Position numbers and translations under genes: made by a program. A stretch of DNA of 58,614 bases, filler included, from Dugesia japonica (taxonomy: Eukaryota): the NCBI GenBank assembly GCA_001938525.1. It is 6 parts of 6 records of this genome, joined end to end, with 100 filler letters (N's around TTAATTAATTAA, not from the genome) between each part and the next. Parts side by side here need not be neighbours in the genome. Positions count along the whole stretch, not along the records: positions 1 to 8,504 come from MQRL01587614.1; 5 more parts are not named here. One strand, 5' to 3'. Shown here piece by piece: positions 1-8,504 of the stretch. The notes beneath the pieces were generated by a model. That model did not search any database and was not told the origin of the DNA. It was given only the letters and a program-made list of their open reading frames with translations. The first letter of the stretch is position 1. Each line of letters opens with the position of its first letter.

Positions 1-1946
1 TTTACAACTCAAGTGTTAATTTTTATGGAACCAAATAACAAAATAAAAGATTCTGAGGAAACTACTTACAGAAACTATGACCATCATTACTTGGTTATTC
101 AAACAAATTAAAAACTCTATGCATTGTTGGAAATCTCAGTCGCTTTAATTTATTAAAATTTAAAATAAAATACTTATTTAATTATCCAAATATTTAAATT
201 TTTCAGTTATTATAAATATTTTTAAAAAATATCTACACTAAACATTTTCGAAAATTTAAAATTTGATTATACAATTATTTTAATTTATCAGTTTTTTAAA
301 AAAAAGTCTACAATAAATTATGTTTACAAATATTTTAACTGGTTCTTCATTTATTTCTAAAAATCTAATATTCCTTATTCATATTTTTAACAACTTCATT
401 TCTTAACAATTTCAAATTGTTTAATTTTAAAACAAATATTTTAAAAAAAGGATTTCAAACGAAAGCACAAAAATTAAAATTCGCTTTTCAAAACATACTC
501 ACATTTATTTTTACAACAACGCATCTGCAATCTTCAGAATTATTATAATTATACGCTTATCAAGTTTGTTACAGTTTGTACATGCTTTTAATCGGTGATG
601 ACTAATGTATTGATAAAATAGTCCAAGATATTAATATCAATCTAGTTATAGTTTTGGTAAGTGTAGAATCTGATATTTCTTATCATGACACAAATCCCAA
701 ATTTTGCCTTAATATTTGATGTTGCCACTTGTAATTCGTTTTTTGGCAATATTACTCATTCTTAACTATGGCTTGTAAATGTTGATTTGATTCGTCCATA
801 AAATATTAATTCAATAATTAAATATTAAGATATATAAATTATTAGTCCAAACAGCCAGCAATGAGTAAATAAATTATATAACTGAACTGTTGAATAAAGA
901 AGACAATTCATGTGGCGTTTTCTGTCCAAAGATTATGGAAATCTAATGTTTGAATGAAGGCTAGTCAACACTTTAGACCATCTTAAGATTCTTTGCTCAG
1001 CATAGTCCTAAACTAACTGAGACTATCAATAGAGACAGAAGAAAACACTGGAGGTTTACTGCTTACACAAAGAAGCTGAAAGCTGATATATAGCCCATAT
1101 ATGATAAACGGATGAGGATCTAATCTTGATAATATTATCAGCCAAGATTTATATTTCTACCTTACTGAAAGCCTGCTGTGAGCCGAATTAAAATAGGTAA
1201 AAGATTGAATGATACTTGTTATGAGAATTAAAATCACACAAATGATATAATTATGGATAAAATATACATAATGAATAATATATTACCATAAATTATATAA
1301 ATAAATTAAGATAAATCATTTGGCCTAATTTCATAAAAAATAAAGACGATAAATAAATAAATAAGAAATAAAAAATAGAAACATAAATAGACAAACAATG
1401 AAATGAGTAATTATTGATTATGTAATATTTATTTGAGTTATTGATATAAAATTGTATTTCCATAAAATCTTAACCTGTTAACCGGGATGGACGTATACAT
1501 ATTTTCAACGTAAACAATAGTTACTATGAAAAGAACGTATACAAACGTTCATAAATAATATGCGGTTTTGTCAAAACAAGCTTAACGTGTATTTAAATAG
1601 TTAGAAATTAAATGTTGCAAGCGTGACTTAATAAGATGTCCTTATGNNNNNNNNNNNNNNNNNNNNNNNNNNNNNNNNNNNNNNNNNNAGCACCTGAATC
1701 ACAACTTAATAAAACAGAGAAAAGTCAAAGTAATTGTAATTTTAGAAATTCTAATACAATACATACATATTTTGACATTCAAGCATAAATAAAAATTTTA
1801 AAAAACAAGCGACATAATTGTTAGGAAAATCGTCCGAAAACAATTTATTTTCAAATAGAACACAATTAGTCACACATAATTTATTAAACAAAATTTAAAA
1901 ACAAGTTTATAAAATAAAATAACATAAATAGTAGTATCTTTAACCA

Positions 1947-1953
1947 ATAATAA

Positions 1954-2016
<63 letters not shown>

Positions 2017-2075
2017 NNNNNNNNNNNNNNNNNNNNNNNNNNNNNNNNNNNNNNNNNNNNNNNNNNATAATAAAA
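1947..2075. repeat. (AAT)n microsatellite with internal N gap
   Basis: Visible directly; source of the poly-Y ORF. Confidence 0.95.
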
Positions 2076-2428
2076 AATAATAAAATACAATATAAATTTA
2101 GAATATGATTTAAATTAATAAAAATATTTCAATGGAAAGAATCAACAATAAATGAAATGTTTTTAGTTTTTTATAATTACAAATAAATTATATTACTCCG
2201 CCCTTTAATCTTTTTTAAAAAACACCAAAATTTGAAATGATTTAATTTTATTTATGAATTATAATTCTTTATTTTCATTAAAAAAATATTTATAATTTGA
2301 AATTTAAAATAAGTAATTTGATACTGATAATTTAATTCACAGGTAATATCGATCAATTAAAACAAAACCAAAAGATATATAATCATACAAAATTTCAATT
2401 AAAATTTTAAAAATAAAAATTAAATTAC

Positions 2429-5400
2429 GGATTTAAAGGACTAAAAATGAACAAAGCACTGTATGGTAGCACTGGTTTTCGTTGAATAGTTTCTGGTGCT
2501 ATTTTGTTTGGCGCTGGATCGCTTTCTAAGGAATTGAAGTTCGTATTGTCTATTAAATATTTTATTGAAATAATTAAGTTTCAATGGAACAAATACCATG
2601 TCCAATCATTCCCAATTTACCGTTGGGCTTATTTGAATTCAACAAACAACCTTTATCATTGATTTCGACTTGATTGTGATCACTTAAATATAAATTAAAA
2701 CAATTAAATGTNNNNNNNNNNNNNNNNNNNNNNAAAAAAACATTGAAAATCCAAACAGACGAATTAATTTTATTCTTTTCACTGAGTATGTAACCATACA
2801 AAAAGTTTACCGTTAACAGACAAGATTCATACGTTGAAACAACTAATAAAACAGAAAAATTAGGATTTAATAAACAAACTTAATGAGTAGTTGAGATGAA
2901 TGAATTGAAAAATTACTAGTGACATAATTAATATAAATTCTAAAAATGGAATAGTAATTGATTATATAACTTGAAAGGTAATAATAGGCTGTTACAAATA
3001 TTATAAACTGTGCTATTATTAAGCACCACCCAAGATATAAGTACACCATTTTATTTTTGCTGATTTTTAAATTTATTGTAAATCTTTTACGAACTGCCTT
3101 TATATTTCAATAATTTTGAAGACTTCATCTTCGCAATAATATAAGAGGTAAGTAAATGATTTTACCCGATAAATTAATAGGTTGACGGAAAAGATTTGTA
3201 AAGTAAAGTAAAAGAAAAATAATAATAAAAGTTTACTAATAATGATTTTCTTTTAATAGACAAATTATTAAATGAAGTAGTGACGTACGGTATCAATAAT
3301 ATTCAACCAGGTTTTAGGCAACATGAAGATTCCACGACGATAAAACTCTTTTGAATATTCTGTTTCACTATCTATTGTTTATCCTGTAGCAATTTTAGTG
3401 AATGTCTCAGATGTTTATCAGCATTCGCTTTTCGTTTCGTAAATCTTTGTGTGCAGTTGAAGATGGATATTGGTCTAGTTATTTCCATTTCTGTTTTCTA
3501 TGCGGATTACTGAAAGTCATTTTTTCACCACAAGTAATAATATTTTCNNNNNNNNNNNNNNNNNNNNNNNNNNNNNNNNNNNNNNNNNNNNNNNNNNNNN
3601 NNNNNNNNNNNNNNGACAAAACCTTTCCGCCAACATATTATGATAAATCCGTAGAATATATTTAATTCCAATTTAATCGATAAATAAAAAATTAACCTGA
3701 TTCAGATACAATAATTCAGCGCATAAGTCAAACCTTGACTATGAAATAAAATAATTGTTTTTTTTGTGGCCAATGAATGATTTTAAAGATCAACCTGTAT
3801 ACCATTTTAATTAACTACAATGTATTATATTTAAAATTCCATTAAAAAAAATTATTAAAAATGAGGTGTTTAACTTTATTTTTTGTTATGTTATTTTATG
3901 TTATGTTATGTTATGTTACATTTTAAATAATAAAGATTTTTACAAAAACAAAAAATGAAGAGATATATTCTTTATGAAGAAATGTATGCTTTATAATTCA
4001 ATAAGTCAAAAAAACAACTTTGATGAATCACATAAAATTTCAAAAATATCAAAGAAGAAGTCATAAAGTAGTTTTAACGAGCTATATGTATGCACATCAC
4101 GAACAATTGAATGTATGATCCTCGCATCGACCTACAGGCTTGATCTTTATACCTGACCATCTAGCTTAGTCTGAGTATTGCATGCATTTATATTCTCTGT
4201 TTACATGTTATTGCCTGTGTTGGTGTTGATTTTAAATTTGATTCCTAAAATTAGGTTATTACTGTTTTAAAAAGTAAGATAACTTATTACTTTCGCTAGT
4301 GCAAATTTTATGTAAAGAGCTTAAAAATACGATAAAACATATGAGCAATCCAAAATTATAGTACACATCTCAGAAAATCATATAAAATTTTAAAGGCATA
4401 TATTATTTGGACTTCGTGTTGGTCAATATATTAATACAACGAATTAAATTTTCTTTGAAGATCATAAATAATGAAATATTTAAACCCTTTAAATTAAAAC
4501 TATAAATATGCATAATAAATTAACTTTAAAAATCTCAAATAGAAATNNNNNNNNNNNNNNNNNNNNTGCTTTGAAACATATTATCTTGCGCAGTTTTCCT
4601 AATACATCGGTTGCAAATATTCAGTTTGAAAATAACTATAAAATCAGAGTTTTATTTATTCAATCTATTTAAAATAAAAATTAAAATAAAATAAAATAAA
4701 ATAATAGATTTATCTAAGTCCCAATAGCTATATTAGATGATAAACATTAGCTAAAACTATGACAGTTACATTCATGCTCAAAAGTGATACTAAATATAAT
4801 AAATAAATATTAAAAGTGCGAACTTACAAACTAAAATTTTTGGAAATAAGGCTGTTTGCAGTTTGAGGTGAAGGGGGGCAAACTTGAACCATGGGTGGAT
4901 CTATTGATAAAGGCAGTCGGCCAATGAAATTATCTGAGCTTTTCTATAATAAGAATAATAAATAATAATAATAATAATAATNNNNNNNNNNNNNNNNNNN
5001 NNNNNNNNNNNNNNNNNNNNNNNNNNNNNNNNNNNNNNNNNNNNNNNNNNNNTAATAATAATAATAAATAATAAAAAACAATAATAACAATAATTTTAAA
5101 TATTATTCTGATTACTTATGAATTTGATATAATAAACTTCATATTGTATAAACTTTATATAACTATAAAATCAAAGTTTTATTTATTCAATCTATTTAAA
5201 ATAAGAAATAAAATAAAAATAAACTTCAATATTTATTCCTTTAGCCAACTTTACGAAAATAATTGTTGGACGTAACCACTAATCGTTTTTCAGAATTTAT
5301 TTAAAATAAAAGCTTCGATCAAACTTTTTTTGCTTTTGATAATTATTCAAAGTCGAAAATTAGAATTATTATCAAAAAATATATATTTCTATCGTAGCTT

Positions 5401-6354
5401 TTATTTTAATGAATAATCAAACTATTTGATAAAGTTAATTATTTTATCACAAAACAGAATAATAATGTTTACTAAAAAGAAGCAAACAATTATATTTCCG
5501 TTTTTATTAAATAAAAATCTATTATTTTTTCTGAACACAAAACTATATAAAACATAATTCCCTGATCTTTCTTTTTATTAATTTTATTTTGACTTTTACG
5601 GTAAAAAATGATTTTCAATGAAATACAGAATTGTTTGCCATAAAATATATCAAACATTCAAGATTTGGAAATATCATTTCTCAATGAAAATTATTAAAAA
5701 CACAAAAAAAACTATAAATAAAAATGTTGTAGGAAAAATAATATATATTCTTCGACTATAAATTTACAAATATTAATCATGTTACTTCTTCACTTTGTTG
5801 CGCTGCAGCTTCAGCTGCTCTTTGAAGTTCAGCCGCTTTTTCTTCTTCAGCAGCTGTTAGTTCTTGAGCATTCGCCAAATTATCAACAGCAATAGCCAGA
5901 AAGACATTGAGGAGGGTGTCTGATTATTCGATAATGAGTTAAGGATGCAAATAAATAAGCTAATTATTTTGCTTAAATTAGTTATTGTTTCATTAAATAA
6001 AACTATTAATCAAATATTGAAATTTCATAACCATGAATTGATTGTTCCAAAATTCTTCAATTGTTGTAAATATATAAATCACATGACAAATATTTACAAA
6101 TATAAAAATATAAATAATGTTTTATAATATCAACGAGACAAAGCTATAATCACTGAAAGCATATATATGATACCAATGTACCAATAAAATTCGTGTTACC
6201 AAAGCGTAATTTTTAGTAAATGTTAATAACAAATTAATTTTTCACAAAATAAATAAGAATACCAAAATTGTTTGAATGATTTCAAATATCTAGACGATCA
6301 AAATATAAACAACCATTTTCAGAAATTTACACAAATAATTTCCAAATGTCATCA

Positions 6355-6422
<68 letters not shown>

Positions 6423-6755
6423 NNNNNNNNNNNNNNNNNNNNNNNNNNNNNNNNNNNNNNNNNNNNNNNNNNNNNNNNNNNNNNNNNNNNNNNNNNNNNN
6501 NNNNNNNNNNNNNNNNNNNNNNNNNNNNNNNNNNNNNNNNNNNNNNNNNNNNNNNNNNNNNNNNNNNNNNNNNNNNNNNNNNNNNNNNNNNNNNNNNNNN
6601 NNNNNNNNNNNNNNNNNNNNNNNNNNNNNNNNNNNNNNNNNNNNNNNNNNNNNNNNNNNNNNNNNNNNNNNNNNNNNNNNNNNNNNNNNNNNNNNNNNNN
6701 TTGATAATTATTATTATTAAAATAATTATCAAACATTAATAATAACAAGATGAAC

Positions 6756-6820
<65 letters not shown>

Positions 6821-6870
6821 NNNNNNNNNNNNNNNNNNNNNNNNNNNNNNNNNNNNNNNNNNNNNNNNNN

Positions 6871-6937
<67 letters not shown>

Positions 6938-8140
6938 CAAAAATGGCCAATGAAAATTAATTTTAATCAGATTAATGTAAATTTTGTTTCTATTTAAACG
7001 TTTGAAATCAGAATGAATTGAGCAATAATTCCTGAAGAAGGCATAGATGAAATATTGAACCATTTATAAAAATAAAAGAACATCATTTTGATCTTTGCAT
7101 TTAAAAATAAATTTTAAATAAAAATTTGTTTTTAAAAATATGTATTTATTGTGTTAACGCTTTAGTGTAGTTACGTGTGCTTGTAAGTAGACGTGTTTAT
7201 TCCTATTGAATGTAAATAAGTTTGTATCAGAATAATTGATTGGTTATATGGCTTTCAGCTTTTCTGGAACGTATTAGGGTTAAAATACAGGAATGAGTGT
7301 ATTATCAAGTAAATTTTTAAAATTAATTTAATCACTGTTTAAATTTAATATTAAAAAAACACAATGTCTAATAACATTCTACATTTAAATTGTGCTATGC
7401 TATACTCAACGTTGAAGCATTAAGCGTGAACACCATGCAAATCGCGATTACAGAAGTTAGAATATTTTTAGTATAGTGTGAATTTTGTCTACACCTCTAA
7501 TCTATAGTTAATCCTCTATTTAATTCTACACAAAGTCTACGCGAAAATGTTTATATAGAGTCAAGTTTGATAATATTTTCAAATTTCTGATTATTATTTT
7601 TCCCTTTCTGCATGGTTTTATTATCGTCTAATATCTCAAATAAATCAAAATAAAAAAGGATACAGTTTCCAAATACAACTAACAAAACAAAATAAATAGA
7701 AAATATTGTTCCACGATCTTTGACACCACCTTTTGATTGAATTCCGTTGTACATAACTGTATTCCAGTCTTCTCCGGTTAATATCTAAACGTGAAACAAA
7801 AAAAAACAATATAAATTTGTTGATAATAATAAAGTATTTTTAAAAGATTCTATTTTTCAATATTGATCAGCATGCAGATGTGTTTTCATAAACTTGCAAT
7901 AACATGCAGACAAAATAGAAAATTAAGAACACAATCAATATTCAATGTTGATAAATATTTCATTTTATCAGAATATAAATATTTAAATTCTATTATTATT
8001 GTTTTTATTAAAAAATGAAAACATAAAAGGATACAATTTCCAAATATCATTATCAATGCAAAATAAGCTGACGCCGCCATTGATTTTTTGGCTTTGATAC
8101 CACTATACATTGCAGTATTCCAATCCTCTCCTGTTAAAAT
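2429..8140 (-). CDS. Cav2: Voltage-gated calcium channel alpha1 subunit, Cav2 (cacophony-like) type, partial: domain II pore loop/S6 and II-III linker
   Basis: Phase-consistent exon chain: (8140-8035 OR 7784-7664) > 5919-5786 > 4943-4828 > 2682-2597 (alternative donor after 2621) > 2549-2429. It translates [78 protein letters not shown] and P.LPYS..FI.SP.NP are Cav2-like. Flanking exons lie outside the contig or window. Confidence 0.93.
3281..3700 (-). mobile_element. Decayed mariner transposase fragment (intronic)
   Basis: Minus strand reads [17 protein letters not shown] (cf. IVTGDEKW..NP.RK..W) and [20 protein letters not shown] (mariner C-terminus); stops and a large internal deletion. 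Confidence 0.7.
5160..5420 (-). mobile_element. Mariner-associated dispersed repeat fragment
   Basis: TTTAAAATAAAAGCTTCGATCAAA recurs as reverse complement at ~14378-14400 and ~49244-49267; 5160-5200 repeats at ~4635-4675. Confidence 0.55.
5786..5919 (-). CDS. Cav2 exon: second half of IIS6 and start of II-III linker
   Basis: (T)AC ACC CTC CTC AAT GTC gives [45 protein letters not shown]; GTAAC donor; absent from the ORF track. Confidence 0.95.
5938..5945 (-). promoter_or_regulatory. U12-type branch site
   Basis: TCCTTAAC ends 16 nt before the AG (5921-5920) with no polypyrimidine tract: gcaTCCTTAACtcattatcgaataatcAG. Confidence 0.9.
6355..6935. repeat. (ATT)n/(AAT)n microsatellite tracts with N gaps inside the U12-type intron
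   Basis: Visible directly; tracts in opposite orientation either side of the gap. Confidence 0.95.
7654..7663 (-). promoter_or_regulatory. U12-type 5' splice site after exon A
   Basis: GTATCCTTTT exactly at the exon boundary. Confidence 0.9.
7664..7784 (-). CDS. Cav2 alternative exon A (DII pore loop to first half of IIS6), 121 nt
   Basis: Poly-T tract then gtttAG acceptor; [40 protein letters not shown]+T; phase 0 to 1; donor GTATCCTTTT. Confidence 0.92.
8025..8034 (-). promoter_or_regulatory. U12-type (minor spliceosome) 5' splice site after exon B
   Basis: GTATCCTTTT matches the U12 consensus RTATCCTTT exactly at the exon boundary. Confidence 0.88.
8035..8140 (-). CDS. Cav2 alternative exon B (DII pore loop to first half of IIS6), 106 nt
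   Basis: cttgccatAG acceptor; [35 protein letters not shown]+T; phase 0 to 1; donor GTATCCTTTT. Confidence 0.88.
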
Positions 8141-8444
8141 CTATGGCAAGTTTAAAATATGGATTTCGATATTATTTTTTTTTAAAGAATTTATGAATTA
8201 TTTCATAATAATGAATTTAAATTTTTATTTTAATATTATTAAATTATTTCAATTAAAATATTTAATTATAATTTAAAAGATAAACACAAGAACATATATT
8301 TAAAAACAAATATTAAACAATACAACTATGGAAATCTATTTGTTAGTATTGTTTAGTTTGACTAGTTGATATGTATCAATTAATTAATAGTGAATGTGTG
8401 TATTAATAATTTTTAGATTGTGATTGATTGATTATTATTATTAC

Positions 8445-8492
<48 letters not shown>

Positions 8493-8504
8493 CATTATTA
8501 TTAT

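Follow-up and report, generated by a model that had tools for sequence, protein, structure and literature searches.

Introduction

Textbooks teach that exon choice can be enforced by incompatibility between the two spliceosomes, yet very few cases are known from nature. In JNK2, the intron between exons 6a and 6b pairs a U12-type donor with a U2-type acceptor and is unspliceable, and the downstream exon owes its default status to a strong pyrimidine tract (PMC1874599). A genome-wide survey of human genes found five clusters of exons with U2/U12 incompatibility, three of which are the JNK paralogues, and none was reported in a CACNA1 gene (PMC5740500 and its appendix, Fig. S18). Here we describe a tandem exon pair of this type in a gene of the flatworm Dugesia japonica, which sequence comparison supports as encoding a Cav2-type calcium-channel alpha-1 subunit. 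The DNA analysed is a stretch of 58,614 nucleotides (nt), filler included, from assembly GCA_001938525.1; the sequence claims cover its 8.5-kb window (positions 1 to 8,504, record MQRL01587614.1), coordinates are window positions and the channel gene lies on the minus strand. The exon pair is a newly found case of a known, rare arrangement; the mechanism itself is not new.

The locus resembles exons 6a/6b of the vertebrate JNK genes (MAPK8/9/10) in having two tandem homologous exons (A and B), each with a U2 acceptor and a U12 donor, followed by one downstream U12 acceptor (at exon C). As in JNK, the intron between the copies appears to be unspliceable, the stronger pyrimidine tract and the default role belong to the downstream copy, and the upstream copy would be the restricted one. 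The likeness to the JNK hybrid intron had been proposed in an earlier note on this DNA, and the architecture does match that of JNK2 exons 6a/6b (PMC1874599). The gene family and the phylum are different, however. Both productive junctions are documented in JNK, whereas the exon A to exon C junction was not seen here; conversely, a composite RNA that retains the hybrid intron was directly seen here.

Duplicated pore exons are known in other four-domain channels. Exons 15a and 15b of invertebrate NALCN are mutually exclusive domain-II pore exons, found also in the planarian Schmidtea (PMC3557258; PMC4436565). They share with exons A and B the duplication of the domain-II exon that runs from the filter to pore helix 2 (P2) and S6, and in both genes the copies differ between P2 and S6. 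The NALCN copies switch a filter residue (E versus K), whereas exons A and B both keep TGEDWN, so that the EEEE filter is unchanged and it is the loop and S6 that differ. No U12 mechanism has been described for NALCN, which is without the U12 introns common to Cav and Nav genes (PMC6259924). Exons 12a and 12b of invertebrate Cav3 are likewise mutually exclusive domain-II pore-module exons of an invertebrate calcium channel (PMC9694082). They belong to another channel class, however, and the segment concerned is the S5-P1 turret upstream of the filter, and the exon pair alters Na/Ca preference; no U12 involvement was reported (PMC9694082).

Minor introns are conserved in Cav alpha-1 genes, for example as introns 2 and 13 of rat Cacna1c (PMC8767276; PMC6865273). 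The Dugesia locus is similar in that a U12 GT-AG intron lies within a Cav alpha-1 gene, possibly at the position of intron 13, and dissimilar in that the Cacna1c minor introns are constitutive and single. Flatworms possess the minor spliceosome (PMC2770079, PMC10639083), and in schistosomes the set of its small nuclear RNAs is complete (PMC2770079). Searches of the open-access literature returned no description of this Cav2 pore-exon duplication, in agreement with the earlier note, whose author knew of none.

Architecture of the exon pair

The sequence architecture is confirmed. Two paralogous exons in tandem, both of phase 0 to 1 and both ending FGN+T, had been reported, and their coordinates and sequence hold. 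The elements of the pair are as follows.

Exon A, 8035..8140, minus strand: 106 nt, phase 0 to 1; by translation and PDB match, the divergent, upstream copy of the exon for the Cav2 domain-II selectivity filter, P2 and S6.
Exon A acceptor region, 8141..8180, minus strand: AG with a weak pyrimidine tract (longest run 4) and no U12 branch box; U2-type by default.
Exon A U12-type donor GTATCCTTTT, 8025..8034, minus strand: directly after exon A.
Hybrid A-B intron, 7785..8034, minus strand: 250 nt; the donor is of U12 type, the acceptor of U2 type, with a T9 tract and without a branch box; retained in the single exon-A RNA seen.
Exon B, 7664..7784, minus strand: 121 nt, phase 0 to 1; downstream, canonical Cav2-like copy, joined to the upstream exon and to exon C in RNA.
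Exon B U12-type donor GTATCCTTTT, 7654..7663, minus strand: directly after exon B; the joint 7664>5919 has GT..AG ends.
U12-type intron B-C, 5920..7663, minus strand: it would also form the 3' portion of a putative A-C intron (5920-8034) and contains both assembly gaps of this region and an expressed repeat-like segment.
U12 branch box TCCTTAAC, 5938..5945, minus strand: the sole exact copy in the window, 18 nt before the AG at 5921-5920.
Exon C, 5786..5919, minus strand: 134 nt, encoding the rest of IIS6 and the start of the II-III linker, then GTAACA.

Exon A codes for 35 residues and one T, exon B for 40 residues and one T. Both begin in phase 0 with ILTGEDWNT and both finish FGN+T. The P2-S6 loop of exon A is 4-5 residues shorter and more basic than that of the canonical copy, and its S6 face differs. 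Exon C completes the split codon to Tyr, and reading is open through exon C after either A or B. Inclusion of both copies (227 nt for A+B) shifts the frame, and A+B+C runs into stop codons, as had been predicted.

The donors and acceptors agree with the proposed clash. The perfect U12 donor claimed for each copy is present, GTATCCTTTT occurring after both; its core GTATCCTT occurs only twice in the window, exactly at the exon A and exon B boundaries, where 0.15 occurrences would be expected from shuffles. A U12 donor on each copy is what results when an exon adjoining a U12 intron is duplicated. The U12 branch box, TCCTTRAY, is expected about 10-26 nt from the 3' splice site, and the spacing of TCCTTAAC before exon C falls in this range. 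The branch site claimed for the downstream exon thus stands, while the accompanying statement that there is no pyrimidine tract is roughly right and not exact, since pyrimidines make up 62% of the tract before exon C, in runs of up to 5. The intron before exon C has the /RTATCCTT donor and the branch box near the AG without a long pyrimidine tract that mark a U12-type intron. The acceptor of exon B is, as described, of U2 type, with a T9 run and no branch box. On the minus strand, the A-B intron and the sequence upstream of exon A contain no match to TCCTTAAC at up to one mismatch. An Rfam scan of the window found no RNA family.

The assignment of the gene to the Cav2 (non-L-type high-voltage-activated) class of alpha-1 subunits is supported by comparison of the translated exons. 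Exons A and B find their best PDB matches in Cav2.1, Cav2.3 and Cav2.2 at the domain II P-loop/S6, outranking Cav1 and Cav3, and the domain-II Cav2 identity given in the earlier note is upheld. The canonical copy, exon B, matches Cav2.1 with E 1.6e-11; the divergent copy, exon A, matches Cav2.2 residues 659-697 with E 1e-4. The domain-II P-loop carries TGEDWN with the filter Glu, and the start of the S6/II-III linker is Cav2-like. The closest named relatives are flatworm Cav2 fragments (Cichlidogyrus, Hymenolepis, Paragonimus, Taenia), which carry N- or P/Q-type annotations. The window takes in three to four exons of the channel gene, and a long transcript (X4 contig 5, 4,601 nt) extends downstream of them.

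Transcript evidence

The RNA data comprised contigs of X3, X4 and X7, from three studies, and one raw run, X22. Their power is low: contigs lose rare variants, and the raw run amounts to 13 reads, with none on exons A or B.

Exon B is the constitutive or default exon. The predicted junction 7664>5919, with GT..AG ends on the minus strand, is present in the contigs of X3, X4 and X7, and accurate removal at the predicted U12 sites is thus seen in RNA, for the B-C intron only. On its other side, X7 contig 18 (1,508 nt) joins an upstream exon ending TTAACTGTGTTTCAG (LTVFQ) to exon B at 7784. Coverage of exon C is exactly 5786-5919 in the X3, X4 and X7 contigs, with raw reads also in X22. Because the joint 7664>5919, found in three runs, spans both assembly gaps in intron B-C (6423-6700 and 6821-6870), the order and orientation of the scaffold are right. 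Both gaps have (ATT)n or (TAA)n arrays at their edges and interrupt no reading frame; the length of intron B-C, 1,744 nt as written, is alone uncertain. The 278-nt gap may hide a third exon copy or a small exon, yet (ATT)n stands on both sides of it and the B>C joint is direct.

Exon A appears in a single RNA, X4 contig 12 (413 nt), in which 26 upstream-exon letters are joined to exon A at 8140. The 26 letters at the X4 loose end at 8142 are those found before exon B in X7, which shows that the exon A acceptor is used. From 8142 the contig continues unbroken to 7757, through the whole A-B intron into exon B. Its depth is 5.2, compared with 31 for exon B and 35 for exon C. We rejected genomic DNA or raw pre-mRNA as its source. 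The intron upstream of A has been removed, and X4 has zero depth over 7164-7623 (the B-C intron) and 8176-8330 (the intron upstream of A); contig 12 is therefore processed RNA. Over 386 positions, contig 12 and the window disagree at 10. The frame of exon A, continued into the retained intron, ends at a stop at 7888-7886 (open reading frame 7886..8110), which gives the composite RNA a premature stop. We read contig 12 as a molecule on which the major spliceosome took the acceptor of exon A, the minor spliceosome took the donor of exon B and the hybrid intron stayed.

The natural transcripts support the view that the A-B hybrid intron is unspliceable. No joint 8035>7784 was present in any of the four runs, within their limited power, and in contig 12 the intron is retained; both results accord with the prediction that this intron would not be spliced. 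They also bear on a different account, in which A and B are true alternative exons whose exclusivity comes mainly from frameshift and decay or from competing RNA structures, the U12 donors being merely inherited. Double inclusion does shift the frame by its 227 nt, duplicating an exon beside a U12 intron automatically gives each copy a U12 donor, and in human genes frame-based exclusion is far commoner than U2/U12 incompatibility (PMC5740500). However, the RNA that holds both exons retains the intron and no A>B junction is seen, which is the signature of an unspliceable intron and not of double inclusion that was spliced and then degraded. We regard this account as very improbable.

The prediction that one copy only is included has fared differently for the two exons. 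Exon B has both flanking junctions in RNA. Exon A has, in these low-power contigs, its upstream junction only; no finished in-frame message containing it was found, and the sole exon-A RNA seen is the composite of exon A, retained intron and exon B, with its premature stop, in one of the three contig runs. Exon A might accordingly be mainly the entry to an unproductive 'poison' composite, whose premature stop would lower Cav2 through nonsense-mediated decay or through a truncated two-domain protein; the U12/U2 clash would then be real and its role dosage control. The one exon-A RNA is exactly this product, present at about one sixth of exon-B depth in X4 and with the B-C intron removed; the stop at 7888-7886 is met when exon A reads into the intron, the A>C junction was not found in RNA, and minor-intron retention is known to lower channel protein (PMC8767276). 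For a poison exon the coding sequence would be dispensable, yet in exon A the pore signature has outlasted the saturation of synonymous sites, and 35/35 residues are the same in P0001, a read-through open reading frame of a relative in UniParc. Its own U12 donor is perfectly retained, though the poison model never employs it, and two of the three contig runs lack the composite. We consider it unlikely that dosage control is what exon A is for.

Probable selection on exon A

Comparison of the two copies with each other, and with P0001, speaks to the coding function of exon A. Between A and B the synonymous sites are saturated (pS 0.77), while pN is 0.09 across the first 18 codons, the pore half. 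TGEDWN, MY, GI, YF and FGN are all retained between A and B, and the two donors are identical at 10 of 10 positions despite the saturated synonymous divergence. In the local composition of 22.6% GC, 35 open codons would arise by chance with a probability of about 0.04. P0001 matches exon A at 35 of 35 residues and exon B at 38 of 40. It reads Cys-Ile-Leu after each exon, consistent with tGTATCCTT, and its intron between the copies is shorter (about 113 nt) and diverged. Were the 113-nt intron of P0001 kept between its exons A and B, the frame would, in contrast to the window, continue into exon C.

From these comparisons we argue that exon A and its own U12 donor have been under selection. Such selection would imply that A>C splicing and translation occur somewhere.

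The same comparisons can be set against the idea that exon A is a relic of an old duplication, with an acceptor hit by splicing noise and a conservation that stems from gene conversion or chance. Exon A is indeed the more divergent copy (PDB E 1e-4 versus 1.6e-11 for exon B), its acceptor is weak, it has no productive junction in RNA, and none of the other relatives examined has the duplication; in P0001, the Asp that precedes exon A is a hint of a missing acceptor. On the other hand, chance is poorly compatible with 35 open codons at this GC content, or with a low pN in the pore half beside saturated pS and a donor identical at 10/10. Gene conversion would homogenise synonymous sites, and these are not homogenised. 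In P0001, exon A is unchanged while the intron differs in length and sequence. A relic is in our view improbable.

Model for exon choice

The best explanation of the locus, which we favour with slightly better than even confidence, is a JNK-type hybrid-intron exon pair in which exon A is a productive alternative. We propose that a pore exon encoding the selectivity filter, the P2 helix and the outer half of S6, situated directly upstream of an ancient U12-type intron, was tandemly duplicated, and that the duplication carried along both the U2 acceptor and the U12 donor. The resulting layout would be an upstream exon with a presumed U2 donor, then exon A and exon B, each between a U2 acceptor and a U12 donor, then exon C behind the U12 branch site and acceptor. 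The 250-nt A-B intron, U12 at its donor and U2 at its acceptor, would be removable by neither spliceosome, and a productive message would thus have to take one of two routes. In the first, A is skipped, the major spliceosome joining the upstream exon to B and the minor spliceosome joining B to C. In the second, B is skipped, the major spliceosome joining the upstream exon to A and the minor spliceosome joining A to C. Exon B, with its strong pyrimidine tract, would be the default. Exon A, with its weak acceptor, its shorter and more basic P2-S6 loop and its different S6 face, would be the minor and probably cell-type-restricted alternative. Where the acceptor of A is chosen and the nearer donor of B is used, the hybrid intron would stay and the RNA would carry a premature stop. 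The evolutionary comparisons make it likely that exon A is used productively and in mutual exclusion with exon B; from them we infer A>C splicing and a translated A isoform.

Several observations weigh against a productive exon A. They can be summarised as (i) the predicted joint 8035>5919 was not found in the three contig sets or the raw RNA run, at low power; (ii) in X4 neither the exon-C contig on its way into exon B nor contig 12 as it passes 8035 has a branch, so that A>C in that run is rarer than the retention product, or absent; (iii) in the region of residues 15-19 of P0001 the residue before exon A is Asp (GAY), by which an AG flush with the Ile codon is not encoded and the acceptor there is putative; (iv) a collection of 5.8 billion proteins contained, over the searchable length ranges, no A-C joined protein; (v) the donor of the upstream exon lies outside the window and its U2 type is assumed. 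A protein region search for a spliced exon-A fragment returned P0001 itself only, and a search with exon A plus 5 residues gave no match. In the JGI metagenomes neither the exact A>C junction pattern nor a degenerate exon-A pattern had a match.

A more specific form of the model, to which we give somewhat less than an even chance, is that some neurons translate exon A as part of a second Cav2 pore/S6 isoform, and that two U12 donors, in competition for one U12 branch site, set the proportions of A, B and the dead-end composite. If there is such a translated isoform and such donor competition, minor-spliceosome activity would adjust which presynaptic calcium channel is made and how much of it. 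The pair would then be the first U12-based exon switch in the pore of an ion channel and the first outside vertebrate kinases.

An independent example from an invertebrate would show this arrangement to arise whenever an exon beside a minor intron is duplicated. Its position in a pore-lining exon of a presynaptic calcium channel would offer a system for linking minor-spliceosome activity to channel isoform and dose. The composite RNA is direct evidence from a natural transcript, without a minigene, that a hybrid intron stays in the RNA. Should exon A be translated, gating, permeation or sensitivity to drugs and toxins could differ, given its shortened, more basic P2-S6 loop and altered S6. Such changes would be relevant because flatworm calcium channels are studied as anthelmintic targets.

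Ancestry of the minor intron

The intron and the duplication differ in their distribution among relatives. A single pore exon ending GN+T and followed by GTATCCT at the same phase-1 site is found in Hymenolepis weldensis (L002) and in four further relatives (L003-5, L006, L007/8 and L009). Branch-like boxes precede exon C in L002 (TTCCTTAAT, at 18 nt as in the window), L003 (TCCTTGAC) and L009 (TCTTTAAC). On this comparison we take the U12 intron at the pore-exon site to be ancestral or old, and the duplication to be local. The earlier note suggested looking for the duplication in other flatworm Cav2 genes. No second pore-exon copy was present in any of the related loci examined (L001, L002, L003-5, L006, L007/8 and L009), and P0001 is the only other sequence found with both copies.

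Related sequences contain two further variants of the exon. In the monogenean Cichlidogyrus, a Cav2 fragment (L001, 3797-4129, GCA_045687925.1) has its pore exon fused to the upstream exon. It is a native 35-residue short-loop exon, like exon A, and the intron after FGN shows a U12-to-U2 conversion, with a GTGAGT donor and a pyrimidine tract. In the stick insect Timema bartmani, residues 1-150 of a predicted Cav2 protein (CAD7447876.1, P0002) contain four near-identical tandem pore-exon segments (LTGEDWNEVMYQGIRSQGG...YFIIL); either this exon was recently duplicated in tandem in the insect too, or the segments are an artefact of assembly or annotation.

Other features of the window

One further exon of the gene lies downstream of the pair.

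Exon D, 4828..4943, minus strand: the next exon after C, with a U2-type acceptor and a 3' end predicted from GTAAGT only.

The first 30 nt of exon D follow the loose end at 5786 in four runs and were placed at 4943-4921. Its acceptor comes directly after an (ATT)n array and an assembly gap (4982-5052).

Within intron B-C, the segment 6947-7131 has high RNA-contig depth (up to 89 in X4 and up to 30 in X7) and raw reads on both strands. It has many continuations, with loose ends at 6979, 6989, 6992, 7072, 7121 and 7131, and its behaviour is that of a dispersed, expressed repeat or a piece of some other transcript, and not that of channel messenger RNA. In the intron upstream of exon A, an X7 contig of depth 2.2 differs from the window at 8174-8242 by a 59-nt skip and 12 other letters, within a 26-nt tandem repeat; this difference is an indel polymorphism or a strain difference.

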